From the NCBI GenBank assembly GCA_964057225.1, contig OZ059897.1, positions 5,642,001 through 5,706,000 of the forward strand: a stretch of DNA of 64,000 bases. Reading direction: 5' to 3'. The position numbers and the translations under genes were made by a program. Below the pieces are notes generated by a model, which was not told the origin of the DNA, made no database searches, and worked only from the letters and a program-made list of their open reading frames with translations. This document shows positions 13,624 to 30,595 of the stretch, in pieces. Origin of the DNA: Auanema rhodensis (Eukaryota > Animalia > Nematoda). The stretch's first letter is position 1; the number at the start of each line of letters is the position of its first letter.

Positions 13624-13840
13624 GCAAAAAATTGAATTTGTATTTGCTTGATATGTGTATATGTGGATATTTAACTCAGCAATTATTGTTCTTTCTAATT
13701 ATAAATAAAATATTATAAAACATTATAGTTAAGATAGTATGAATATAGACAGATATTCCTAAAGTTCGTGTATGTCCCCGAGCAACGTTCGTGTCATGAC
13801 ACCTTACTTCGCACTTCATTCGTATTAATTAAATCTAAAT

Positions 13841-16432
13841 ATATGGCATATTTCACATGACTGGATGTGGTATGTTGATAACCTAAGGATATTGTTGAAT
13901 TGAAGGTGTGAACATGTATTTTCACGGATATATCTTCTCATTCTTGCTTCATCCTCCACATAATCATCTTGTCCATGCTTCTTCTAATTTTCTACTCAAG
14001 TTTCTTCAAAGTTTTACCCAAATTTCTTCATTTTTATGTTAAAATTATTAAGAAACATGATGTATTCTATCATGATTTCACATATAAATCATATAGTTAA
14101 CATATATGATTTGACCGACATAGTACATACAACTTGACTTTTCTATTGTTTTCCTCATCATATGATCATAAAAGATTTTTTCTTTTTCATTATCTTATAT
14201 CCATAAATAGGATTAAACGATTTCCTTTGGCAATTCTATTCTTAATTCCGTTTTCTCTTTGATTTCATGCTTTTTACGGTCTGCCAACAGCATTTTCCCC
14301 TTTATGAGTAGCCGCAAATCTGTCGACCGGCTTAACTCTCATCAGGTCGTCCAACCCATAGTCTACGGAAGCAAATCACTTCTCATCAGTTGTTCCTCTT
14401 GTTCTTCTCTTAAGACCTATGCTTCTTCGTCTTTCTTTCCAAGAAATGTTCATTTGCTTTCAGATGAAAGGCCTTGTTTGGTCCGTCTTCTTTGTATTTT
14501 TCTCAACCATCGTCACAGCTGACGTCAACCCTTTTTCCTATTGTCGTGAAAGAGTCTTCAACAACTTCTGTGATTTGGAATGTGAAGATGAATTCTTACC
14601 GACCGGTGATTGTGATCTTTACAAGCCACCAACTGTAAGTTTGATTTCTTCTTTCATCAAATTCTTACTTTCAATTCAGATTATCCGGGATGTTAACTTG
14701 ACCATAAACAAGCTTCCATTGGTCTTTGCTAGTCGTCAGAGGTTTACTGTAATGCAATGGAGAATTCAGTATAAAGCTCGGATTCATATCTTGAGTGATC
14801 TCACTAAGATCAGTATCCCATCCAATGCTTTTGACAATGGCAAGGTAAAAGCCCATACATTCCACGTGGCTTTACATGATAATCTGGATTTACAGGATTC
14901 ATCTTCATTCCAATTTTGGATTTTGGTTCGTTTCGAGTCAAGGGCTTCAGAGGAAACATCTCCAATTCAAATCAAAGAAGCATTGGAATCCTCGCTAGTA
15001 GAAAGCGATCGTTCAGAATTTGAACGAATGAGAAGAGCCTCGGAAGAACTTCGTCTTCTAGTCGTCGTTTTGTTCCTCACTATGCTTTCAACTCTTGCTG
15101 CTGTTCTCGTTCTTCTCCGTACCAGACGGCGTCGTCCAGTCTGTGCTCCTGTATGGATTCCACCTATGGAGGACGATCTTAAGAGTAAGTTTACAAAGTT
15201 GATTTCAGATTTAATAGAAACGTGATTTCAGAATCTCCAGAATTGTTCACAACTGCTTCTTCTATCACATATCATAAAGCTATTAGCGAATACGATTATC
15301 TTCCTTATGGGTAAGTTCGTTTAAGTTTCTTGTCTATTCCAACTTGGTTAAAACAATTTTTTTGATCAATCTCTTCTTTCAGGGAGAATGGAAATCAGAT
15401 TCAGAGAAGTGGCAAACCTCAGAAACAACTTTCGTAAGTTATCCTTGTGTTTGATCAGCGTTCAATTCTTCTTTCCAGTTACCGGACTCCACAGCTTCTG
15501 GAAGTTCCACAAAGGACCCCTCTTCATTGGCTCGTGGACAACAACAGTAGTGAGATAACTTCGAACGAAAAGCTTCTGAAAATCGAAGAAATGGTTCAAA
15601 ATGGAATTCACATCAATGCTCAGGACGAAGACGAGGAGACTGCTCTCTTCTTGGCTGTTCGCTGCCAACGTCACTTCATGGTTTCTAAGCTTTTGAGTCT
15701 TGGAGCTGATGCTTCTATCATGAATCGTACTAACTCTACCTGTTTACATCAAGCTGCTCACAATATTGACGTGGAAATGATGGAAATTCTTTTGAATCAT
15801 AAGATTCTTCTGAATACAGTAAGCATTTACCAGGATAGTTGAAGAAATAATTTGAATTTCCCTCTAGGTTGTTGATGGTCGTCGTGCTATCGACGCAGTT
15901 GATGATACTGATCGAACTCCTCTTATGGTTTGTGCTGACAATGTGCTCTCCACCAAGCTTGTTCGTATGCTCATTGATGCTGGAGCTGATCCTGCTGATT
16001 CAGGAGATAAGGTTTGTTTCACCCAGTTTAGAGGCTTCTAACTTGATGTTTAATTGTAGGAATCAATCAAGTATACTGGAATGACTGCTCTGCATCATGC
16101 GGCTCAAACTGGCAACTTGCCAATGATCCAAGTTCTTTTGAACATTAGAGCTGTTAAGATCAATTCTTATGATCAACAAGGAGCTACTCCTCTATGGTAT
16201 GCTGTATCCAGTGGTCATTACCATTGTGTTCAAGCTCTTCTTAATGCTGGAGGCGATATGTACTCCCCAGATCACTTGGTTAGTTTTCTCTTCTCCTTCT
16301 TCTTCTTTTTCCTCCTGCTAGATCTTCCTTTTTCAAAAAATTTAATTTTTCTTCTTTTCAGGATCGTTTTCCAATGGACATTGCTAGAAGCAAAAGATTC
16401 ACTGATATAGAAAATATGCTCATCAGACATCA
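13841..16432 (+). repeat. Left arm of a 2.6-kb near-perfect inverted repeat
   Basis: Reverse complement of 23442-26027. Mirrored ORF coordinates sum to a constant 39868 (39874 after a 6-nt indel in the last intron). Confidence 0.97.
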
Positions 16433-16478
16433 GTTTGAAAGCCGTGTAAAGAAGTCTCGTCAACCTGCTGCAGCATAA
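14464..16478 (+). CDS. EGF-less LIN-12/GLP-1 (Notch)-family receptor, copy A, no PEST tail (~524 aa, 9 exons)
   Basis: Exons 14464-14634, 14680-14844, 14896-15184, 15232-15310, 15383-15433, 15479-15818, 15868-16011, 16060-16278, 16362-16478. Domains: signal peptide MKGLVWSVFFVFFSTIVTA; LNR-like CRERVFNNFCDLECEDEFLPTGDC; HD-like region; TM; RTRRRRPVCAPVWIPPME (RAM, cf. VWMPPME of LIN-12/GLP-1); ankyrins RTPLHWL, AQDEDEETALFLAV, CLHQAA, KYTGMTALHHAAQ. Ends KKSRQPAAA*. Confidence 0.9.
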
Positions 16479-17052
16479 TCCGCTTTAACTATGAATAGGT
16501 TCAAATATTTTTTGTACATATTAGAGATTATTTTTATTTTGTTTTCAATTGTTTTTTTAAATGAGAGCTTAACAGAGAATTATAAATATTTATTTGAAAT
16601 GAGCTTAGAGTCATGCACTTTGATTCATTGGAAAATCAGCTGTTACATAGAATACAAGATATAACTTTGACAATTTTCTAGAGAAAACACAAGATGATTT
16701 TGCGAGTTTATATAGTATATATTCGCTTCAGCATCTGAATCTTAACGAATATCTAGGAAGAGAACTTGGTCGACGTACAACCAAAATCTCTCATTCAAAA
16801 GAAAAATAAACATTTAGTGTACTCCTAACACTATATTAAGAGATTATATCTTAATTTTTGATGAAACTCATGAAATTCTTGAAAGAAGACTTCAAGCAGT
16901 TTATGAAAATTTGGGACACTTCAGAAAATACTTTTAAACATGATTTAAAAAATTTTTAAGATTTTTTCTGAATTCATTAGCGTTTTTTAACAACCAAACT
17001 ATATTTTTTCTAAATTTTTGTAGTTTGTCTGAGAAGGTATAAGGATTTTTAG

Positions 17053-17619
17053 TGAGTGTGCAACCTTCATCGCACATGACTGTACGCGCCCAAAATCCTA
17101 AAACAGAGATAGCCTGTTTGAAACTGTTTCTCTCGGCTAAAGACATCGCATACAACCTGAACGACATTATCTTTCTGCGAAAGACAGATGACGTCACTAG
17201 GGGACTCTGATGTGCCCATGTTTTGAGAATGCACGAAGATCGGTAAGTTGTTTGTCATAATTAGCTGTGCCTCTCATCCTCATGAAATGTACCTTGTTTA
17301 GTGATGCGGACGGTCACGAGTTACCGAGAAACGTGTTCAGCTGCAAAAGCTGTAAGACGTAGTTCAACGTTATCATTACCGTGAGTATATTTATTTGTCA
17401 AATGAAGCCAATAAATCCATTTTTCATGTTTAGCCTCTCAATAACCCGATTGACAAGCTGAACAAATCAGCTGATGACATACTGTGCGTTGGTGGACCTG
17501 AAAGCTGCCGTTCTGAATTCCTCAACGCTCGCTGGCTCCAAGATACTATTCGAACTCGGCACTGTCTAGTTTTCAGTATCGTCGAATCAAAGAATAAAAC
17601 TGGCTTTATTCCATTTTGA
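17053..17619 (+). pseudogene. Spliced gene remnant with two in-frame stops inside the insert
   Basis: Good donors (CG|gtaagt ~17243, ACC|gtgagt 17381) and acceptors join three exons into one frame: ...DDVTRGL*CAHVLRMHEDRDADGHELPRNVFSCKSCKT*FNVIITPLNNPIDKL...GFIPF*. Confidence 0.45.
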
Positions 17620-17883
17620 TAAACATTGAAAAAGTTTCTAGTTTTCGTACTTGTATTAAGAATCATAATTTTTCCTTACTGTGACTTTGTTTTTGAACTT
17701 CCGAAAGGTTTATTTTAATGTTGAATAAACTCCACAAGGAATGACTTGTCCCATCTGTTACTTTGACTCAATTTTAGTTTTGAGCTCAATGCTTACAGAA
17801 ATAAAAATTCGATAAAAGCATTTATTTTTGCTATAAAATATATTAGTGAACAATATACCATGTATTATGCATATAACAATATC

Positions 17884-18351
17884 TTACCAATTGTGAAGCT
17901 TTCCCTTAACTGCCAAGCATTGATAATTTCTACGAAAAATCTGATTAATTGCACGGTCGATACGGAGAGAAGTGGTACGAAAACCATCAAGCATGTGATC
18001 AACCTCTTTCCTGTCTGTTATTAATTTTGGATCATGACGACGATGGATTTCTTCAAACTTGAGTTGATAAATGGTACGAATGGCTGGGATTCGCATGTCC
18101 AAGAACGCAATGGCGGGAGGAAAGTTCTTCTCAAAGAATAGCGTGCAATCAAGGCTACGCATTTTACTGCGTTGTTCCCTCAGCTCGTAGTACTCCTGGA
18201 TATTGGTTGCGGCTGCGATTTCCTCTCTGCTGGGCTCCGTATAGTTTGTCCAATTTCCAGGTGGGGCAAAGCCTAACTCAGCACGAAGCTCCTCAAGACC
18301 AATGACAGCTTGTGCCTCTCTCATCAAAATATCATTGAAAATTTCCGCCAT
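17884..18351 (-). CDS. Intronless 155-aa hypothetical helical protein
   Basis: Uninterrupted ORF with protein-like composition (MAEIFNDILMREAQAVIGLEELRAELGF...FFEKNFPPAIAFLD). An intronless ORF of this length is atypical for this window. Confidence 0.65.
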   Translation of the reverse strand: MAEIFNDILMREAQAVIGLEELRAELGFAPPGNWTNYTEPSREEIAAATNIQEYYELREQRSKMRSLDCTLFFEKNFPPAIAFLDMRIPAIRTIYQLKFEEIHRRHDPKLITDRKEVDHMLDGFRTTSLRIDRAINQIFRRNYQCLAVKGKLHNW

Positions 18352-18983
18352 CCTGTGTCAAAATGTCACCCATTTTTATCTTCGCCAACTGTTTGTCCAT
18401 GTCAAAGGCTCAAGATGGAGCGGTCTTCTCTACAAAGGAGATAGAGCTGTCTAGCGAAGAAGCGGTTGATGTAGAGAAGTAAGTAGCATTGTTGGTGCTG
18501 CCTGAAAGATACAAATATCAGCCAAAACATGACCTTTTCATTTATGCAACTATATATTATAACTATAATACCTGCATGTAAATGGGTCGCAAAGCAGAGA
18601 TAAATGGCGACTATTTTCTTCATATGTTCGCCTGAAAAAATTTAGCGTATTTTAATACTTCTTCGCTAGGAATATGAACAATTTTTATTATAGTCGAATG
18701 AAGAAAGAGAGAAGGCGGCATTCGATCGACCTAGTTCTCGCTCACAACCCGACCGACCCAACACTAGACAGACGACGCTAGACTAGACGGTCATGAACAA
18801 AATGAGATTAAAAAAATATTCACTAAAAATTAAATTAAAGTAAAGACAACACAACTTTTTGAAAATCACTAGTTTCAAGCATTTTCAAAACTAGAAGAGA
18901 ACGGAATTAACCACAAATATGTATACCGAATTCTTGTATTTGAAATGTTGAACATTCAATTATCCTATCTACCTTGATTCTTG

Positions 18984-19829
18984 ATTTACCATGACAGTTG
19001 AAGAAATAATTTGAATTTCCCTCTAGGTTGTTGATGGTCGTCGTGCTATCGACGCAGTTGATGATACTGATCGAACTCCTCTTATGGTTTGTGCTGACAA
19101 TGTGCTCTCCACCAAGCTTGTTCATATGCTCATTGATGCTGGAGCTGATCCTGCTGATTCAGGAGATAAGGTTTGTTTCACCCAGTCTAGAGGCTTCTAA
19201 CTTGATGTTTAATTGTAGGAATCAATCAAGTATACTGGAATGACTGCTCTGCATCATGCGGCTCAAACTGGCAACTTGCCAATGATCCAAGTTCTTTTGA
19301 ACATTAGAGCTTTTAAGATCAATTCTTATGATCAACAAGGAGCTACTCCTCTATGGTATGCTGTATCCAGTGGTCATTACCATTGTGTTCAAGCTCTTCT
19401 TAATGCTGGAGGAGATATGTACTCCCCAGATCACTTGGTTAGTTTTCTCTTCTCCTTCTTCTTCTTTTTCCTCCTGCTAGATCTTCCTTTTTCAAAAAAT
19501 TTAATTTTTCTTCTTTTCAGGATCGTTTTCCAATGGACATTGCTAGAAGCAAAAGATTCACTGATATAGAAAATATGCTCATCAGACATCAGTTTGAAAG
19601 CCGTGTAAAGAAGTCTCGTCAACCTGCTGCAGCTTAATCCGCTTTAACTATGAATAGGTTCAAATATTTTTTGTACATATTAGAGATTATTTTTATTTTG
19701 TTTTCAATTGTTTTTTTAAATGAGAGCTTAACAGAGAATTATAAATATTTATTTGAAATGAGCTTAGAGTCATGCACTTTGATTCATTGGAAAATCAGCT
19801 GTTACATAGAATACAAGATATAACTTTGA
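18984..19829 (+). pseudogene. Partial third copy of the Notch-like gene (last three exons + 3' UTR of copy A)
   Basis: Direct repeat of 15825-16670 (offset 3159) with a few substitutions (e.g. R>H, V>F). It has no start codon or 5' exons, but its splice sites are retained. Confidence 0.9.
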
Positions 19830-20657
19830 TAGGAAGGCTTGTAGTTTACTCAAGTGATAAAGATGTTATATGACGATATCTAAGCTAAATAGGAAAAAGC
19901 TTAATATAAGTGATAGAAATAATCAAATTTTATGATCAAATTTGGAAATAGTTTGGTTTCGAATGTTCAAAAAAAGAATGTATTCCTTGACACATCACAT
20001 TTGTATGGAAGTTCAATGTCCACGATATACTATCACACTGTTTGCTCTTCGAACATGCTACCGAACAAATATTTTTATTATGCTTTGTATAAGAATTATA
20101 AAAAACTTTAGAAGAAATTGCAAGAATATAAAAAGAAAATGAAGATAATTTACTATATCATTAAGCATAAAGAACAATCAAAAATTTCTAAATTTCTATA
20201 GAATTCAAGGATAATTAAGTGACTTTTTAAAGAAATTTTAATAAATTCCTATATTATTGCACGAAGAGCTAATAAAATATTCTTATCAGTCATTCAAACT
20301 ATACGTTGAAGCAGAAGGGCAATTGAATATCAGCAGGCTTTTCATCATATTCATTCCCCCTTAATATAAACCTGTGAAAAAAATAAGATAGAAATGTAGA
20401 ATACTGTTAATTATTGTTAGAAATATATATTATATAATACAAAAATAATAAAATAGCATATTTGTATTAAAATAAATATTTTGAATTAATAAAAATCTTC
20501 ATTTTAAAGTAAACATTCTCCATTTAATCTCATCATACGTTCATAAATCTTAACTTGGTTCTTTATTTTTTACTTACTCCTCTTCTTTGATTATATATTT
20601 ATCATATTTTTTTATAATTTGTATAATTATGAATTATTATGCTTTATTTGCTTAAGA

Positions 20658-22527
20658 ATGGGATTTTTGCTGAAGTTGAAGCAATTATCTCTTTTCTTGA
20701 TTCTTGCCGTTGCTGCTAATTTTGATTATGGTTTCTCGTCTACTTATTTAAACAATCCAGTTGAACAATTCGAGGTTTTCTGAATCCCTTATGTTTTTTT
20801 TATTATTTTTTGAAAAGTATTCAGAATTATTTAAATGAATCGTTACGGAGAAGAGGGGATGTTATGACCGATGCGACATATAATTGGATATGGAATTTAA
20901 TTCTTAATATATGGTAAAGTTCATTCAAACATACTTGCTTATTGAAATTTCTTCCAAGGTTTGTTGGATTTTTTGTGGGAATTTGGTTTAGTCCTCTGCT
21001 AAATGATCGCTTCGGTCGTAAAGGTATCTACATTTCATGTCTCTGCTCTTGCTTCATCCAAAAATTTATTTTGAAGTTGGTTATATAGTTGGAAACGGTT
21101 TTGCATTGATAGCAGCTATACTTCGATATCTTGGAGTTATCTTATATATTCCTGAATTATTGTTTACTGGAAGATTCATCTCTTCAATTTGTATGGCTAT
21201 CACCTATCAATCTTGTATTTTATTTCTTCAGGTTTCTCACAATGTCGTTAAATTACATGAAAATATTCAATTTAAGGAATGTTCTCCTACAAATATGAGA
21301 GGATTTATGTCATTTTTATCGGAAATATCATATGCTATTATGTGCTTTGTTGGAGCAATGTTAGGAACTCAACAATTGCTTGGAAATCATCTCTCAATTC
21401 TTGTTCTTGTGCCTGTTCCATTGTGTACGTTTTCATATCAAACTATCCCATATATTTGGATTCGGATGCTTTTACCGGCTTACTGTAGTTTAGGTTTCGT
21501 ATTCTTAATGGTGTTGTTCTTTGTTCATGAAACTCCAAAGTTTCTCTTACTTGTTCGGAAGGATAGAAAAGGAGCTGAGAAATCTGTTATATTCTACCAA
21601 GGACAGAATGCTCCTGTACCGGATATTCTAAATGAAATCATATTAGTTAAACTTCAAATATAATATTAAATGAATATCTATTATTAATTTCAGGAAGCAG
21701 AAAATGAAGAAGAAACACCCGCAGCATTACAAGCTCTCAAAGAAATTCTTACTACACAACATCTTCGAAAAGCTGTATTACTAAGTTGTTGTGCTTTACA
21801 GGTTTGAAAACATAATCACATACTTCAATATTAATTTTTGACTTCAGAACACAATTGCTTTGTGGTCACTACTCCTTTCTTCAACATTTTTCTTGAGACA
21901 AGCTAATGTAAGCACAAGTCTGTCTGCTTGGAGTAGTACAGCTATGATGTTATCTTATGTCGGAGGAACATTACTTGGATCATCATTAATAGAAAGGTAT
22001 TTTTGATCAAAATAATTTCAAAAGAAATGCTCAACTTTGATAGAGTTGGTCGACGAGGATTGTTGCTATTTTTTATTTTTGTCAATAACTTGTTATTGAT
22101 TACTTTTGTTGCTTGTTCACAACTTCAAGTTGTAGCGGATTTCTTGAAATATGGATGTCTTGCTTCACTAATAGGTTATGGATTCACATATGGGTTAGTA
22201 TGAAAAAGAAAAAGTTCATTTTAATAATATATCTTTCTTTATAGCTCAGGAGTAGGTCCAATATCATGGTTCATCTCATCTGAATTAGTGCCACAGCGTT
22301 ACCGTAGCATGACGCAGTCATTCTGTTATGCTGTTAATACCTTATTTGTTGTTATAACAACATTTTCTATATTACCATTATATAATGCTATTGATTCATA
22401 TGCTTTTTTAATTCTTTATACATTGCCAAATATATTTTGTTTTATCTATCTAGTTAAAGAACTTCCGGAGACTCGTGGTCGTGAAATTCATGACATAGTA
22501 GCTGAATTAAGAGGTAAAGTACGTTGA
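20658..22527 (+). CDS. MFS sugar-porter (GLUT-like) transporter (multi-exon)
   Basis: NFDYGFSSTYLN, DRFGRK, LFTGRF, QECSPTNMRG, HETPKFL, ERVGRR, GVGPISWFISSELVPQRYRS, LPETRGR. Lies in the spacer of the inverted repeat. Confidence 0.9.
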
Positions 22528-22873
22528 TCATACTACATAAAGAGAAATATCTATGTCTAAACATATGTACTATGTTATAAATATAATAATATGTATAAGA
22601 AAATTGTATATTTGATTGTTTTTCATTATATTATTAATTGTTATTCGTTTAAAGTTTATTAAATATTATATTATAAAAGAAATACATATTATATACAATC
22701 CGGGATACAACAATAACTTTTAAACATACAAATACATATATGTGTATAATAAACTATAATAAATATCTGAAACATACATTTTTCATAAATAATGATAATA
22801 AAAACAATCAATATGTACAAACTTATAACTTTTTCAACTTCCTCTATTAACTATTTGCATATATCGTATCGTA

Positions 22874-25404
22874 CTAGACGAGATCTTGACAAACCCATTG
22901 ATTATATGATTTTGTTTGAGCATAAAACTGCATATCTTGATATGGAATCAATGGCTTAGGGAAATATGAGCTTGTTTCAGCTTTTCCGTATGTATCGGCA
23001 GGCTTTTGAACTGGTGCATACATGTTTTCCTTATACTCATCGCATGGTGGTGAACTGGCCTGAAAAATATAAAAATAATTAGCATAATACAATGTTTCTT
23101 AGTTCACGTCATTCACGTGGAACGCTGCCCGTTGAACTAAGTCATTTCTATTTTTAACAGATGATGCGATCGGTTGCAATTTTATTTTCAAAACAAAATC
23201 ATTTTTTGCAATTTCAGAACTACATACCCAATATGAAATGCTGTTATTCGATGGTGGCGAATCATAATGACCAATCACACGTGATGAACCAGATGAATTA
23301 GCTGCAAGACGTACAGGTGAACCATCTTCCGAATCTGATGTAACGATAGGCTTTCTCTAGAAAAAAAATATTGAATTTATTCTTCGATCATCGGCTTTTA
23401 CCTTTGCTGGAGGCTGTCTCGATTTCTCTTTCCGCTCCAATTGATGTCTGATGAGCATATTTTCTATATCAGTGAATCTTTTGCTTCTAGCAATGTCCAT
23501 TGGAAAACGATCCTGAAAAGAAGAAAAATAAATTTTTTTGAAAAAAGAAGATCTAGCAGGAGGAAAAAGAAGGAGAAGAGAAAACTAACCAAGTGATCTG
23601 GGGAGTACATATCGCCTCCAGCATTAAGAAGAGCTTGAACACAATGGTAATGACCACTGGATACAGCATACCATAGAGGAGTAGCTCCTTGTTGATCATA
23701 AGAATTGATCTTAACAGCTCTAATGTTCAAAAGAACTTGGATCATTGGCAAGTTGCCAGTTTGAGCCGCATGATGCAGAGCAGTCATTCCAGTATACTTG
23801 ATTGATTCCTACAATTAAACATCAAGTTAGAAGCCTCTAAACTGGGTGAAACAAACCTTATCTCCTGAATCAGCAGGATCAGCTCCAGCATCAATGAGCA
23901 TACGAACAAGCTTGGTGGAGAGCACATTGTCAGCACAAACCATAAGAGGAGTTCGATCAGTATCATCAACTGCGTCGATAGCACGACGACCATCAACAAC
24001 CTAGAGGCAAATTCAAATTATTTCTTCAACTATCCTGGTAAATGCTTACTGTATTCAGAAGAATCTTATGATTCAAAAGAATTTCCATCATTTCCACGTC
24101 AATATTGTGAGCAGCTTGATGTAAACAGGTAGAGTTAGTACGATTCATGATAGAAGCATCAGCTCCAAGACTCAAAAGCTTAGAAACCATGAAGTGACGT
24201 TGGCAGCGAACAGCCAAGAAGAGAGCAGTCTCCTCGTCTTCGTCCTGAGCATTGATGTGAATTCCATTTTGAACCATTTCTTCGATTTTCAGAAGCTTTT
24301 CGTTCGAAGTTATCTCACTACTGTTGTTGTCCACGAGCCAATGAAGAGGGGTCCTTTGTGGAACTTCCAGAAGCTGTGGAGTCCGGTAACTGGAAAGAAG
24401 AATTGAACGCTGATCAAACACAAGGATAACTTACGAAAGTTGTTTCTGAGGTTTGCCACTTCTCTGAATCTGATTTCCATTCTCCCTGAAAGAAGAGATT
24501 GATCAAAAAAATTGTTTTAACCAAGTTGGAATAGACAAGAAACTTAAACGAACTTACCCATAAGGAAGATAATCGTATTCGCTAATAGCTTTATGATATG
24601 TGATAGAAGAAGCAGTTGTGAACAATTCTGGAGATTCTGAAATCACGTTTCTATTAAATCTGAAATCAACTTTGTAAACTTACTCTTAAGATCGTCCTCC
24701 ATAGGTGGAATCCATACAGGAGCACAGACTGGACGACGCCGTCTGGTACGGAGAAGAACGAGAACAGCAGCAAGAGTTGAAAGCATAGTGAGGAACAAAA
24801 CGACGACTAGAAGACGAAGTTCTTCCGAGGCTCTTCTCATTCGTTCAAATTCTGAACGATCGCTTTCTACTAGCGAGGATTCCAATGCTTCTTTGATTTG
24901 AATTGGAGATGTTTCCTCTGAAGCCCTTGACTCGAAACGAACCAAAATCCAAAATTGGAATGAAGATGAATCCTGTAAATCCAGATTATCATGTAAAGCC
25001 ACGTGGAATGTATGGGCTTTTACCTTGCCATTGTCAAAAGCATTGGATGGGATACTGATCTTAGTGAGATCACTCAAGATATGAATCCGAGCTTTATACT
25101 GAATTCTCCATTGCATTACAGTAAACCTCTGACGACTAGCAAAGACCAATGGAAGCTTGTTTATGGTCAAGTTAACATCCCGGATAATCTGAATTGAAAG
25201 TAAGAATTTGATGAAAGAAGAAATCAAACTTACAGTTGGTGGCTTGTAAAGATCACAATCACCGGTCGGTAAGAATTCATCTTCACATTCCAAATCACAG
25301 AAGTTGTTGAAGACTCTTTCACGACAATAGGAAAAAGGGTTGACGTCAGCTGTGACGATGGTTGAGAAAAATACAAAGAAGACGGACCAAACAAGGCCTT
25401 TCAT
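22874..25404 (-). CDS. EGF-less LIN-12/GLP-1 (Notch)-family receptor, copy B, with PEST-like tail (~627 aa, 11 exons)
   Basis: Identical to copy A through ...ENMLIRHQ, then LERKEKSRQPPAK | exon 23228-23356 (RKPIVTSDSEDGSP...YDSPPSNNSISYW) | exon 22874-23059 (ASSPPCDEY...WVCQDLV*). Confidence 0.9.
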
Positions 25405-26027
25405 CTGAAAGCAAATGAACATTTCTTGGAAAGAAAGACGAAGAAGCATAGGTCTTAAGAGAAGAACAAGAGGAACAACTGATGAGAAGTGATTTGCTTC
25501 CGTAGACTATGGGTTGGACGACCTGATGAGAGTTAAGCCGGTCGACAGATTTGCGGCTACTCATAAAGGGGAAAATGCTGTTGGCAGACCGTAAAAAGCA
25601 TGAAATCAAAGAGAAAACGGAATTAAGAATAGAATTGCCAAAGGAAATCGTTTAATCCTATTTATGGATATAAGATAATGAAAAAGAAAAAATCTTTTAT
25701 GATCATATGATGAGGAAAACAATAGAAAAGTCAAGTTGTATGTACTATGTCGGTCAAATCATATATGTTAACTATATGATTTATATGTGAAATCATGATA
25801 GAATACATCATGTTTCTTAATAATTTTAACATAAAAATGAAGAAATTTGGGTAAAACTTTGAAGAAACTTGAGTAGAAAATTAGAAGAAGCATGGACAAG
25901 ATGATTATGTGGAGGATGAAGCAAGAATGAGAAGATATATCCGTGAAAATACATGTTCACACCTTCAATTCAACAATATCCTTAGGTTATCAACATACCA
26001 CATCCAGTCATGTGAAATATGCCATAT
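23442..26027 (-). repeat. Right arm of the 2.6-kb inverted repeat
   Basis: Reverse complement of 13841-16432, including ~620 bp of upstream non-coding DNA. Confidence 0.97.
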
Positions 26028-27361
26028 TTTAAAAAACATATGTTCTAAAATGGTTAATATACTTGTAATACAGGCTGACAGTCATGAATGTAATATTGTT
26101 CAAGTTACAAGATTGATTTAGGTTGAGAAAGTAAGTGTCGATATTTTCACAAGGTCAAGCTCATGGTAATTTATCCAATGAGAACAGGCTGGAGTTAAAA
26201 TAACTTAAATATATTACTTATAGCAATAGTGAGAGAAAACAAAGTAAAGCATTGTTAATTTATAACTATATAATCTGTATTTCAATATATATAAGATGTG
26301 ACGTCATATTTACAATATTGAGAAAATGTGGATAAAGATTACGAGATGGTGTGGTAAAACGAATAAACGATTGGGTCAATCTGTGATTCGATTTCTACGA
26401 AAGTAAGGAAGATGAGAAACAGATGTATTTGACTGCTTGAACTACGTGTGAACAACTAGATTAAAACATTATTTTTAGTGGGTGGACCATTTCATGTAAT
26501 TATACAATCAGTTTTATAGCGTACAGTAAATATTAAGCTGACATGTTCATTTCACGCTTGTCAACTAGAAATTTGCTCATGGCAATGGAATGTGGTAGAC
26601 CGTTTGTCATTAGGTCCCAACGGTAACACATACTATGTTCTGAAGACTATTTTGAGCAATTAACCCAAATGTGTCACCCTTTTGACTTTAATACTCAAGA
26701 ATTTCCGGACATTCTACTGATAGTTTAATAGGAGATTATGTACTAAAGCTTTTGACCTTTGAAATTTAGACAATTTTCATATAATTGGAGCAAAAGATAA
26801 ATATATTTTTTATATCTTAAACACAACTTAATTAAAAAAAAGCAATTTATTGTAAGAAATATAATAAAAATGATGTTCATTTTTAACGTAAAAGAAGCAT
26901 AAAATTAATTATTTATTAATTATATTAAAAAACAAAAATTTAATTTATGTACTATCAGCTTTAGTTCTGAAATCTTAAAAAACATATTTCACAGTTAACA
27001 TATAGTAATATTTAATATAAATAAATCAATATAACTAAATTAAAATAAATTAAAAATTAGTATGTTTCATTACCTTTTATCATAACAATGATCTTAATAT
27101 AAGAGAAATATTATTAAATATTTTTCTTTCTTTCTTCTTAACTTAACTATAAAATATTTTATTTACAATTGTTATTTTTTAATTATGCAACCTAGCGACC
27201 GGTTGCATGCTCTAATCATTATTTTTATTATATTTCAGTTTAATTAACTTCATTTTAATCAAATTTAAACAATAACTTAGGTAATTTACATTTTTTAAAA
27301 TTAAATATTTGAATAATAATTTATACTTAAAAGGTCATCAATTTTTTTTTATATCAATTAG

Positions 27362-28012
27362 ACATGTACTACACAGTAATTTGAATAATATAACCTGTTG
27401 ATACAATTCGAAATTTGCATATTAATTCATGAGTGGAAATATCCTACACGTGGTTCACGTGGGAATTTCAAAACTTTAAAAACTGATAATTTCACTAAAA
27501 CTATGAAGTTACAAATTTTATAAAATATTTTAATACTATTTCATTAAAGAATTTACCTGGAAAGGAAAATGAATAATTCAAAGTACATACCAAATGTAAG
27601 TCTGGGAATATCATCATGCAGCTCATAATCAATGATTTAGATTATCTTTAATGTAAACTTCTTACCATCAAATCTGTCCAGACATGCTTTTCTTCAAAGA
27701 AGTAAGTGTTTTAGTTAGAGCTATTCAAAGTTGTAACATTTCTTCACAAGGAAATCGAGAGAAATTAAAAATTATTCTTCAAATTCATGATGCAATTATT
27801 ATTTTAATTTCAATTGGATTATTACTCTTTGTATTATATGAATTATATGATGATTATACAAAAGTTAAAAGTATTGTTTAGTTCTATACCATAAAGAAAG
27901 TTACCATTTGTTTTCAGATAGATCAGCATCTGATTCCGAAACAACTTTACTCTATTCTGGTGAATAAAAAAAACTTTTTATTATATTCAAATAATTGTAA
28001 CATAGTTAAGAT
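27362..28012 (+). other. Possible small or degenerate spliced gene with one hydrophobic segment
   Basis: Several good donors (AAT|gtaagt ~27596, GAA|gtaagt 27701) and acceptors, and the segment AIIILISIGLLLFVLY. No clean start or open 5' frame was found. Confidence 0.3.
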
Positions 28013-28155
28013 TTAAATTTTTATTATTCTTTATAAAATTATAAACATTAACACGATTCGCGTCAATAATTTGAAGAAATAATAATACAAAATATAAGTT
28101 TAATAAGCTCTGAAAAAGACTAGAATCTATGATTCATTATACTCACTAATCATGT

Positions 28156-29382
28156 TTAAGCAAAAAGAATTGTTTTTGAGATTGTAGATATTTGATTCTG
28201 AAGTGTTTCGGTAGGTGTGCTGTTATCGGTAACTAGATCATAAGCTCCTTCCAAATCAATACTCGGCCTATGACTGATTTGTAAAACATGTGGATTCTCG
28301 ACATCGAGAGATCTGAATGAATATGAATCTTGTCTTGAAACATCAAATTTAAATATTTAATTTTCAATTTGGAGTTGGTATGGTTTTGCCCACTCCCCCC
28401 TTTAGATTATCATTAGAGCGCATGCGTTTTTATTCGAAAATATAGTCTCATCTCGGCGAGTTTATTTCTTTTGATTTTTGTTGTAGCTCTCTCCATATCC
28501 CCCAGACCAACCGGATCTGGGATAGAGCACTCCCACTGGTTTATGAATTTAGATAATGAAAACGAAAACCTTACCTTTGTATATCAGAATGAGTTCCACA
28601 TGTAAATAAGCCAACTAGAACGATAACTATAGTTACAACAGAGAAGAGGATAACTGAAATTTTTATTTTAAAAATCCCAAATGATAATAAATATAAATAT
28701 TACCTAATAAATATAAGATTTTCTCTTGACTAATGTTAAACCGTAGAAGAATATCTGAAATTTCAAAGTTGAATTTTCAATCTTATTAGATGAGTTCTCA
28801 CTTTTTACAGTACAATTTTCTCCACTATATCCAAGAAAGCAAACTTTTTCTCCTGTTGGTGTGCAGTTAAAATATCCCTCCTCCTCACTCATTGAAGGTT
28901 TGCAGAATTTTTTACAAGCAGATCCGTAAAAATTTCTATAAATATAACAATATTGATTAAGAAGATTCTTAGAAATAGAATTACGGATAGCATTGTAGGC
29001 GATACTGAATAGACACTAGATCGCCAGCTATGTTAACATGATCCTCATTGAGTTCAGTGCTGAAATATTGTGGTTTCCATTTAGGTAAGCCATCCATTAA
29101 TAAACAATTTGTAAGATAATCATCAAAATCTTCCTGAAAATTAGAAATTGATTACAAAAATACATAAAAGACAATAGAAACCGAGTCCATAAACTGAAGA
29201 CAATGATCCATTAAACCTTCTGGAGTGAATATAGGTGGTTTGAATAAAATATTAAGCTGATATGTAGCCTAAAAGAAAAGAAATTAACGAAAATTATAAA
29301 TGTGAACACTAACCTCTATATATTTCAAAAAATATGTTTGAATTAGAATAATATAGTAGAAAGAATGACGTGTATTCATCAT
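28156..29382 (-). CDS. Transmembrane DSL (Delta/Serrate/LAG-2) ligand-like protein with no EGF repeats (~241 aa, 7 exons)
   Basis: Exons 29314-29382, 29182-29268, 28985-29133, 28802-28935, 28704-28754, 28575-28653, 28156-28312 join in frame. Signal-like N-terminus; DSL domain YRLQCYPNFYGSACKKFCKPSMSEEEGYFNCTPTGEKVCFLGYSGENC (6 Cys, DSL spacing); TM ILYLLVILFSVVTIVIVLVGLF; ~60-aa tail ending KTILFA*. Confidence 0.85.
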
Positions 29383-30595
29383 ACTGAAATAAAATGTTAT
29401 TGAATATCATAATAATAAAAACTTAATAAAGAAATTAATTGATAGAAAGCGTTATTTAAGAATTTAATTGAAGAAACTTTGTTGTTATAAACAGAAGTTC
29501 ACCTCTGACAACGTCATCACACTACTGACTGAATGGCCAAATCAGTCTCTCAGAATCGTAGTACATATCTATTTCTTCTATCTCTATTGCTTATCTTTCT
29601 TGGTTTTCTCACAATAGCACAATTTTAATCCGAAAAAGATGCTGTTTGCCATTAGCTAGATAGTTTGCCTAACTAGCATGTAGATTATTGACCGATAACA
29701 TTTAACCTATTATGTAATCCATTCAATTAAGTATAATTGAGCAACCTTTTAAATAGGATTAGCCGATAAATCTTTTAATACTTTCTTCCTTATGGAGATA
29801 TTTTTTTTGTAAAATTAATTAAAATATGTTTTTTTTTTCAGAATTTCGTTTTCGTGAATTCGTACAAGCTGTAGAAATACAATTGGCGCAGGGAAAATAT
29901 TATGTTTGTTCTCTGTACTTTGTTTGTACTGATTAGTTGGATTTTTTAAAAATACAGTTCATCTATTATAGGGTCCCACATTTTTCCATTTTTGAAAAAT
30001 TAAATAAATTCATTATAAACATTTAATGAAATAATTACTTTTTTATTTTTACATCTATATCATTTCTATATCTGTATATCTGTTATAATGTTATTGTGTG
30101 AATGCAACCAATCATCTGCACTGTTTTCATTTAAAATAAAGTTGTCGCCAATGAACAATTTACTCGTCCTTATGTTAAGTTTATGTTAATTTCAAAACAA
30201 TCCAAATAACGAGTTTCTTACCAACTTATCAATCACCATTCTTATCTATTTATATTTTAATCACATTTCAATCATGTTCTTTTTTTTTAATGTTAGCTAA
30301 CGTATTTAACAAAATGCGATATTTTGATGTCTTTTCGCTGCAAATTTTGTGAGCGGTTTTTCATTCAATTTAGTTATATTGGCGTAAGTATATAACTTCT
30401 TATCGGCAGTTTTTATCATTTTATTGCACTTCGTGCTCCATATAAGTCACGACGACTTCAGTTTGGATTTGTTTAAAGTTTTGACTTTTGTGTTCGTTTT
30501 TTGCTTCTTATCTTCAAATCATCTACTCAGTAGTTTTATTTTCATGTGTAGGCTTTGCATTCTTTTTATTTCAGTTTAATAGCTGTGTAAATCAA

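Follow-up and report, generated by a model that had tools for sequence, protein, structure and literature searches.

Known Notch receptors and DSL ligands

To our knowledge, every known Notch receptor uses its EGF repeats both for ligand binding and for force-dependent activation. The canonical partner surface of the DSL domain is EGF11-12 of Notch. Engineered delta-EGF Notch with an intact negative regulatory region (NRR) is inert, whereas forms without the NRR are constitutively cleaved. The diversification of the DSL ligand family in nematodes is also well known.

Among the nematode receptors, LIN-12 has 13 EGF repeats and GLP-1 has 10 (PMC6457397). Notch homologues shorter than 700 aa were discarded in the same survey (PMC6457397), and a gene of the present type would therefore be missed there. 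C. elegans has ten DSL proteins including LAG-2, APX-1, ARG-1, and DSL-1, none of which contains a DOS motif (PMC2504490). The human gene NOTCH2NL is a partial Notch paralogue that arose by recent segmental duplication, underwent gene conversion, and modulates signalling (PMC6092419). No published equivalent of an EGF-less Notch receptor beside an EGF-less DSL gene was found in the literature.

Receptor copies and the inverted duplication

The window, that is, the whole 64,000-nucleotide stretch of Auanema rhodensis DNA that was analysed, contains two copies of a short Notch-type receptor gene. Copy A (14464-16478, + strand) is a spliced model of nine exons encoding 524 aa (14464-14634, 14680-14844, 14896-15184, 15232-15310, 15383-15433, 15479-15818, 15868-16011, 16060-16278, and 16362-16478), and its introns fall at positions corresponding to the joints that RNA confirms in copy B. 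Copy B (25404-22874, - strand) is built from RNA joints and the spliced model, and comprises 11 exons encoding 627 aa (25404-25234, 25188-25024, 24972-24684, 24636-24558, 24485-24435, 24389-24050, 24000-23857, 23808-23590, 23512-23402, 23356-23228, and 23059-22874). Both encode a signal peptide, an ectodomain of ~145 aa, and a transmembrane (TM) helix, followed by a RAM motif and an ankyrin repeat (ANK) domain that are both of LIN-12 type. The predicted order in copy A is signal peptide, 4-Cys LNR-like motif, orphan juxtamembrane region, TM, RAM, ANK, and a short tail before the stop. Copy B is the same as copy A through residue 510 and continues into a 117-aa S/P-rich tail (13 P, 17 S, and 13 D/E) that is missing from the spliced model of copy A; the profile search found no family match for this tail as a C-terminal PEST/degron. 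No full-length annotated protein for the receptor gene was returned by the protein searches.

The repeat search placed the two copies in an inverted repeat, the left arm of which (13838-16305, + strand) takes in most of copy A, preceded by 626 nt of 5' flank that the arms have in common, and the right arm of which lies at 23563-26030 (- strand). The arms are 2468 nt each and differ by 3 mismatches (99.9% identity). Identity between A and B is 99.9% up to 16305, 96% across the next 143 nt, and then roughly 70%, fading. A partial copy C (18984-19829, + strand) consists of the last three exons of an A-type gene, with intact ORFs and no 5' part; its identity is 99.2% with A 15825-16670 and 97.4% with B. 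In short-read DNA from other samples (X5 and X9), the contigs break or branch at the repeat edge (25998-26027), show a depth inside the repeat estimated at about 2-3x or 2.5-4x the flank, and include both the A/C-type and the B-type sequence variants. The inverted duplication is genuine. The pattern of identity indicates that copies A and B are one duplicated gene, apparently homogenised by gene conversion, with the C-terminal tail as the only difference. The first-pass annotation had described two complete receptor genes; its two EGF-less copies are retained here, as a single gene in inverted duplication rather than as two separate miniaturisations.

Transmembrane and intracellular regions

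Hydropathy gives a single TM helix at residues 166-186, followed by a basic stop-transfer sequence. The RAM alignment to the LIN-12 structures 3brd_D and 2fo1_E begins immediately after this helix and includes the motif VWIPP; in the PDB search, the segment RTRRRRPVCAPVWIPPMEDD / RTRRRRPVCAPVWIPPMEDDLK aligns with 3brd_D, the RAM peptide of LIN-12, at E=0.0074. Pfam ANK families are found in the receptor with scores down to 2.9e-31. The best natural single-stretch PDB match of the ANK domain is LIN-12 2fo1_E (E=1.3e-36), with chain residues 125-363 in one continuous alignment and ~39% identity over the first 103 aligned columns, non-consensus positions included. Drosophila Notch 1ot8 is also matched. 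The intracellular half of the receptor is Notch-type in both RAM and ANK.

Absence of EGF repeats and the short ectodomain

Pfam returned only ANK families for the spliced receptor models, without a match to EGF, LNR, NOD, or NODP. The six-frame scan of the entire 64 kb contained no 6-Cys EGF pattern, and no EGF exon was found in the 13.8 kb that precede copy A or in the 38 kb that precede copy B. Together with the transcript 5' end and a signal peptide conserved in an orthologue, both described below, these results establish that the receptor truly has no EGF repeats, as had been proposed for both copies.

The ectodomain contains one motif, C-x8-C-D-x-E-C-x9-C, whose four cysteines are spaced like four of the six in an LNR; it is 100% conserved in the orthologue. 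In the LNR disulfide map, the two cysteines missing from this motif would form one pair. Pfam LNR does not match the ectodomain even at E<=10, the NOD/NODP heterodimerisation domain has no Pfam match in the receptor, and the PDB phmmer search with the receptor returned no Notch NRR. The earlier expectation that Pfam would report LNR/NOD along with ANK and no EGF is therefore borne out for the last two and not for LNR/NOD; likewise, the supposed LNR/HD stump keeps its 4-Cys LNR-like motif, while neither an LNR nor an HD profile matches it. Among 1.84e9 representatives, the sole true phmmer match of the ectodomain is the orthologue fragment P0121. A second match, P0122, was rejected as spurious, being a repetitive protein. 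The single-sequence AlphaFold model has a mean pLDDT of 51, which is too low for use. The ectodomain looks lineage-restricted.

Transcription and selective constraint

The transcript evidence consists of two low-depth RNA runs. RNA contigs support nine of the ten copy B introns, one of the confirmed introns being 51 nt long and absent from the first-pass annotation. Eight introns appear as CT..AC joints in the RNA contigs of X11 and X12, and at the intron 23357-23401 a loose contig end has letters that map to 23327-23356. The last intron (23060-23227) is prediction only. The RNA contigs stop at the acceptor preceding the copy B ATG (25404), and they contain no RNA between 25411 and about 27400; the mRNA therefore begins with the ATG exon. 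One RNA contig extends 6 nt beyond the acceptor with 1 mismatch, reading TTTGAG against the genomic TTTCAG, as the SL1 3' end would give. No RNA specific to copy A was seen in the RNA contigs.

An orthologue contig of 1.4 kb from a related species (L001) has 84% DNA identity and shares the start codon, the signal peptide, and the 4-Cys motif. The receptor dN/dS against this orthologue is 0.033 overall and 0.026 in the ectodomain, at a dS of 0.75, and the constraint on the ectodomain equals that on the ANK domain. Upstream of the acceptor, the divergence is intron-like (80% identity). The receptor gene is transcribed, spliced, and under strong purifying selection, the ectodomain included. Because spliced RNA is present and the orthologue has the same N-terminus at a dN/dS of 0.03, this is a real, constrained gene and not a truncated pseudogene. 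The ectodomain value of 0.026 suggests a specific extracellular function; such constraint would argue against a passive, constitutively shed stub, and a specific extracellular partner is plausible.

The DSL-only neighbour and its linkage to copy B

The neighbouring CDS (29382-28156, - strand) encodes 247 aa in seven exons (29382-29314, 29268-29164, 29133-28985, 28935-28802, 28754-28704, 28653-28575, and 28312-28156), and its splice sites are all GT..AG. The product has a weak signal peptide, an N-terminal region of ~80 aa, the DSL domain at residues 106-150, a 12-aa stalk, a TM segment, and a tail of ~55 aa. Pfam DSL (PF01414) is matched at 38.2 bits, above the cutoff of 24.2 (E 1.7e-9). The best solved-structure match is Drosophila Delta (7alk_A, 4.7e-9), and further PDB matches include Delta, Serrate, Jagged, and DLL (4.7e-9 to 3e-3). 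Where an N-terminal C2/MNNL domain would be expected, the alignment with the Delta structure takes in about 8 residues next to the DSL domain. The protein is anchored as type I by one strong hydrophobic span at residues ~165-188 (maximum Kyte-Doolittle 3.27). No EGF family rises above the Pfam threshold in the ligand, and 12 residues separate the DSL domain from the TM segment. RNA contigs on the ligand cover 28056-28314 only, which corresponds to the last exon and the 3' UTR. These profile and structure matches identify the neighbour as what should be a bona fide small DSL ligand. The first-pass annotation was right in reporting a transmembrane DSL gene without EGF repeats, and also in placing it on the strand of copy B about 2.75 kb upstream: the ligand CDS ends at 28156, with 2751 nt to go to the copy B ATG, and the two genes are next-door neighbours.

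A spliced + strand transcript sits between the ligand and copy B in the RNA contigs. An operon of ligand and receptor was rejected, as the genes are 2.65 kb apart with this transcript in between. No enrichment of LAG-1 sites was found. The chance of a DSL gene being the immediate neighbour is roughly 0.1% if ~10 DSL genes among ~16,000 are assumed, a post hoc estimate from assumed counts.

Proposed function and alternative explanations

On balance, the receptor is probably a lineage-restricted LIN-12/GLP-1-type paralogue that lost its entire EGF-repeat part for ligand binding, along with most of the NRR, and kept a complete signalling half. Shedding of the ectodomain would be followed by gamma-secretase cleavage, and the freed RAM-ANK fragment would enter the nucleus and bind LAG-1/CSL like any Notch intracellular domain. 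Canonical DSL-EGF11/12 pulling could not trigger this release; activity would instead be set by transcription, or by other control of shedding through the conserved short ectodomain. Gene conversion would keep copies A and B near-identical, and copy A may be more stable because it ends early and has no tail. The DSL-only protein most likely acts on a putative conventional EGF-bearing Notch encoded elsewhere, in which case the adjacency of receptor and ligand may be due to chance or have a regulatory basis, and need not reflect physical pairing.

The same domain layout could also serve a membrane-tethered modulator or decoy, an unlikely though possible role in which the poorly cleaved receptor would dampen canonical Notch, either because it retains LAG-1/CSL or co-activators at the membrane or because it is a competitor for ADAM or gamma-secretase. 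An intact RAM-ANK without a recognisable NRR or S1/S2 context is compatible with such a role, and an ectodomain of ~145 aa exceeds the gamma-secretase limit without prior shedding. However, the TM helix, stop-transfer, and RAM follow one another just as they do in LIN-12, and the S/P-rich tail of copy B is typical of a turned-over nuclear fragment; the present observations do not separate a decoy from a signal transducer. It is rather doubtful that the two neighbours form a private pair, with the DSL-only protein binding the short ectodomain in cis or trans and controlling its shedding. Pairing would need a new interface, since the DSL-EGF11/12 interface is impossible here. The immediate same-strand proximity (2751 nt), the lack of EGF repeats in both proteins, and the ectodomain constrained as strongly as ANK (dN/dS 0.026) are in its favour. 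The co-evolving module suggested earlier would have adjacency in one genome as its basis. Against the private pair, the receptor is well covered by RNA contigs and the ligand by its last exon only, the DSL domain is of the ordinary Delta type whose known partner EGF11-12 is absent from the receptor, and the intervening + strand transcript speaks against an operon. Similarly doubtful is a wider scheme of an EGF-free Notch unit, in which the ~145-aa ectodomain would be a new sensing module, shedding would be gated either through a new interface by the adjacent DSL-only protein or by some other partner specific to the lineage, and tail-less A would give a long-lived output and tail-bearing B a short-lived one.

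Two further explanations question the gene structure itself. The EGF-less form might be one isoform, with distant upstream EGF exons (for copy A, beyond the window) used at other stages; with two low-depth RNA runs and 13.8 kb visible upstream of copy A there is some room for this, but it is very unlikely, as the exon 1 ATG and signal peptide come right after the acceptor and are both kept in the orthologue, an upstream exon would bury the hydrophobic segment within the ectodomain, the sequence before the acceptor diverges like an intron (80% identity), the RNA terminates at the acceptor, and the 38 kb upstream of copy B contain no EGF pattern. An assembly artefact or a decaying pseudogene is scarcely credible as an account of the duplication or of the gene itself. 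Long-read chimeras can yield near-perfect inverted repeats, and some DNA runs may be the source of the assembly; nevertheless, X5 and X9, which are other samples under another organism label, branch at the repeat edge with raised depth and both variants, the mRNA is spliced, and dN/dS against the orthologue is 0.03.

Significance and comparison with known Notch systems

A natural, conserved, and expressed TM-RAM-ANK receptor without EGF repeats would be an evolutionary experiment on the capacities of the rest of the molecule alone. It makes three questions testable in a tractable animal group: the ligand-independent deployment of a Notch intracellular domain, the gating of cleavage by a minimal juxtamembrane region, and the partners of DSL domains besides EGF11-12. 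Such paralogues escape annotation and comparative surveys in which genes are filtered by length or EGF content.

Like LIN-12 and GLP-1, the receptor is a type I membrane protein with a juxtamembrane RTR(K/R)RR followed by the VW(I/M)PPME RAM motif, its ANK domain can be aligned over its whole length with the crystallised RAM-ANK construct of LIN-12, and copy B also ends in an S/P-rich tail. What sets it apart from both is the lack of any EGF repeat; in place of three 6-Cys LNRs there is no more than one degenerate 4-Cys LNR-like motif, an HD, NOD, or NODP region is not detectable, and the length is 524 or 627 aa compared with ~1300-1400 aa. The combination of signal peptide, short ectodomain, TM helix, and full intracellular domain resembles an engineered delta-EGF form of Notch, which keeps the NRR, or a partial version of the delta-E (NEXT-like) form, which lacks the ectodomain, whereas the present receptor is natural, conserved, and under purifying selection. 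The ligand resembles the small nematode DSL proteins in its authentic DSL domain, lack of a DOS motif, and small size, but differs in having zero EGF repeats between the DSL domain and the membrane, a 12-residue stalk, and an N-terminal region of just ~80 aa. NOTCH2NL is likewise a partial Notch paralogue derived from duplication with gene conversion, yet it is the mirror image of the present gene: NOTCH2NL keeps the N-terminal EGF part only and has no TM or intracellular domain, and the gene described here is the reverse.

Receptor genes and their transcripts

The two LIN-12/GLP-1-type receptor genes lie on opposite strands. Copy A (14464-16478, plus strand) has nine exons and encodes 524 aa. 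Copy B, on the minus strand with its stop at 22874, encodes a protein of 627 aa that is the same as that of copy A to residue 510 and then extends. The first receptor model consisted of eight exons and was built from reading frames and splice signals. At each copy B intron of that model, contigs of the RNA runs X11 and X12 contain CT..AC joints (GT..AG when read along the minus strand), and they add a 51-nt in-frame intron (24973-25023 in copy B, 14845-14895 in copy A). At the 45-nt copy B intron 23357-23401, a loose RNA end at 23402 matches 23327-23356, and one more, predicted, intron precedes the stop. B-specific RNA is present, and the RNA evidence concerns copy B and not copy A specifically.

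The 51-nt intron of copy A and a 45-nt intron at 14635-14679, both mirrored in copy B, are in frame and stop-free, and ORF-based gene callers therefore read through both. The sole database relative, a 206-aa orthologue fragment (P0121), is such a read-through ORF.

Absence of EGF repeats

The first-pass annotation described the receptors as lacking all EGF repeats, and this description holds. No Pfam EGF match is obtained, and six-cysteine EGF patterns are absent from all six frames of the 64 kb, including the 13.8 kb upstream of copy A and the 38 kb upstream of copy B. A motif scan of the window finds only two RAM sites and one DSL core. RNA depth is 6-7 over exon 1, falls to about 0 above 25410, and is zero up to about 27400. 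In the RNA contigs there is no joint leaving the exon-1 acceptor. One RNA contig extends 6 nt beyond the acceptor with one mismatch, as the 3' end of SL1 would (TTTGAG, where the genome has TTTCAG). Judged by mismatch count alone, this overhang fits SL1 trans-splicing. The ATG of exon 1 directly follows the acceptor, and the exon encodes a hydrophobic signal peptide in which V-x-A precedes the predicted cleavage site.

Receptor protein

Intracellular half: The only Pfam families matched in the receptor are ankyrin families. EGF, LNR, NOD, and NODP give no Pfam match, even when the N-terminal 257 aa are scanned alone at E<=10. Thus, the domain composition expected at first (LNR/NOD and ANK, no EGF) is borne out in Pfam for the ankyrin repeats and the missing EGF, but not for LNR/NOD. 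Among solved structures, the best natural single-stretch match is C. elegans LIN-12 (2fo1_E, E=1.3e-36), aligned in a single stretch over the entire ANK domain of the crystal construct, with about 40 of its first 103 columns identical, some of these outside the generic ANK consensus. The Drosophila Notch ANK domain is also matched. The segment following the transmembrane span aligns to the LIN-12 RAM peptide 3brd_D (E=0.0074), RTRRRRPVCAPVWIPPMEDDLK versus RTRKRRMINASVWMPPMENEEK. Judged from its sequence, the intracellular half is of Notch type, because two independent features, RAM and ANK, occur in the right order and position. Homologue searches with the full-length protein and with RAM-ANK are dominated by generic ankyrin proteins and show no Notch-like protein within the length range searched.

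Ectodomain: The N-terminal region has no match among proteins of 345-1097 aa. An exhaustive phmmer search of 14464-15184 against 1.84e9 representatives gives two matches, a repetitive junk protein and P0121. The ectodomain contains a four-cysteine motif, C-x8-C-D-x-E-C-x9-C, with LNR-like spacing, which may be read as LNR-like; the two cysteines absent from it would, by the LNR disulfide map, form one pair. AlphaFold modeling of the ectodomain without an alignment gives a mean pLDDT of 51.

Orthologue and selection: P0121 derives from a 1368-nt Logan contig of SRR31646600 (locus L001), which aligns to 14390-15749 at 84% DNA identity. The ATG, signal peptide, four-cysteine motif, and all splice sites are conserved, and identity is 85-91% in exons, 69-78% in introns, and 80% in the upstream 74 nt. 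Over 341 codons, the Nei-Gojobori method gives dS 0.75, dN 0.024, and dN/dS 0.033, with regional dN/dS values of 0.026 for the ectodomain, 0.018 from the transmembrane span to the linker, and 0.018 for ANK. By this comparison of coding sequences, at least two species keep a functional receptor gene under constraint, its EGF-less N-terminus included. The ectodomain is constrained as strongly as the ANK domain, which argues for a specific extracellular role and not a passive stub.

DSL ligand

The ligand gene (29382-28156, minus strand) has seven exons with GT..AG borders and encodes 247 aa. At residues 106-150, Pfam DSL scores 38.2 bits (cutoff 24.2), and a strong transmembrane span follows the domain after 12 residues. 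The other Pfam matches are sub-threshold teneurin EGF models only, and these overlap the DSL domain itself. The earlier view of a transmembrane DSL protein without EGF is thus upheld. Its best solved-structure match is Drosophila Delta (4.7e-9), followed by Serrate, Jagged-2, and DLL1/4, and these alignments span the DSL domain and about 8 preceding residues. RNA contigs, from two runs that are both small (about 20 Mb of contigs), cover only 28056-28314, which is the last exon and 3' UTR.

Genomic setting

With a GC content of about 0.25-0.38, the window is AT-rich, and its introns of 45-83 nt with TTTCAG-type acceptors are nematode-like. Rfam and tRNA scans of the 64 kb found nothing, and an exact-sequence look-up of a window ORF returned no record. 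Protein Atlas searches gave nothing beyond clusters of a generic type I membrane or EGF-like kind, all below a useful score. The spacer between the inverted arms holds a sugar-transporter gene (MFS, Pfam Sugar_tr; 20619-22527, plus strand). An uninterrupted 155-aa ORF without a Pfam match (17884-18351, minus strand) lies between copy A and the partial copy C. A dispersed repeat at 28401-28600, which falls within the final DSL-gene intron, has about 3 times the word depth of its flank in the DNA run X5, and contigs of the DNA run X9 break at 28510-28545. A small spliced plus-strand transcript (27400-27762) lies in the interval that separates copy B from the DSL gene, with a GT..AG joint at 27595>27641 in one RNA run. 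It overlaps a 65-aa ORF with a hydrophobic segment (27684-27881).

Inverted duplication and probable gene conversion

A repeat search of the window places the inverted arms at 13838-16305 and 23563-26030, 2468 nt each and 7257 nt apart, and base-by-base comparison finds 3 differences. By BLAST, A/B similarity reaches A 16432 and B 23442. Beyond 16305, identity is 96% across 143 nt, including a 6-nt indel, then roughly 70% across about 60 nt in which the encoded residues remain similar, after which it vanishes. Such stepwise decay is in keeping with an older duplication in which gene conversion would have homogenised the 5' 2.5 kb. A direct partial third copy, copy C (18984-19829, plus strand), comprises the last three exons with an A-type 3' end and intact ORFs, without 5' exons. 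Copy C shares 99.2% identity with A 15825-16670 and 97.4% with B, and may be a gene fragment or a piece of a chimeric transcript.

An assembly artefact as the source of the inverted repeat is rejected on contig and depth evidence from two DNA runs of other samples (X5 and X9), whose Logan contigs were aligned to 23401-29400. In both runs, contigs end or start at 25998-26027, the repeat edge. Word depth inside the repeat, a rough and GC-biased measure, is about 2.5-4 times that of the unique flank (792-1175 versus 297 in X5; 28-42 versus 11.3 in X9). Near 23530-23566, the A/C type, marked by three substitutions and an inserted AAGAAG, occurs alongside the B type in these contigs. In line with the assembly, the depth supports two or more copies of the 5' part and a higher number for the 3' part.

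Relation of receptor and ligand

The ligand stop lies 2751 nt upstream of the copy B ATG on the same strand, in agreement with the spacing of about 2.75 kb reported at first. An operon is ruled out because the 2.65-kb gap between the genes holds the opposite-strand spliced RNA. LAG-1/CSL sites (RTGGGAA) number 13 against 12.4 expected, a chance level, and none is in the shared promoter; thus there is no sign of autoregulation. That a DSL gene adjoins a Notch-type gene by chance is unlikely, but the pair was singled out post hoc in a scan of very large extent. DSL ligands contact Notch at EGF11-12, and this surface is absent from the receptor. The first-pass annotation had proposed a co-evolving module; its observation of EGF-less receptors beside an EGF-less DSL gene stands and its interpretation is supported in part, but a functional connection between ligand and receptor is unproven.

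Comparison with known Notch systems

The receptor is best read as a paralogue of LIN-12/GLP-1 type that lacks EGF repeats, is restricted to its lineage, and was duplicated in inverted orientation with gene conversion; its RAM-ANK output would be released independently of canonical ligand binding. Full-text literature searches turned up no natural Notch paralogue without EGF repeats, and their matches for "lacking EGF repeats" are engineered constructs or unrelated proteins. A Caenorhabditis survey, which dropped homologues of < 700 aa ahead of analysis, inferred 13 EGF repeats for the ancestral receptor (PMC6457397). On the ligand side, none of the ten DSL proteins of C. elegans has a DOS motif (PMC2504490).
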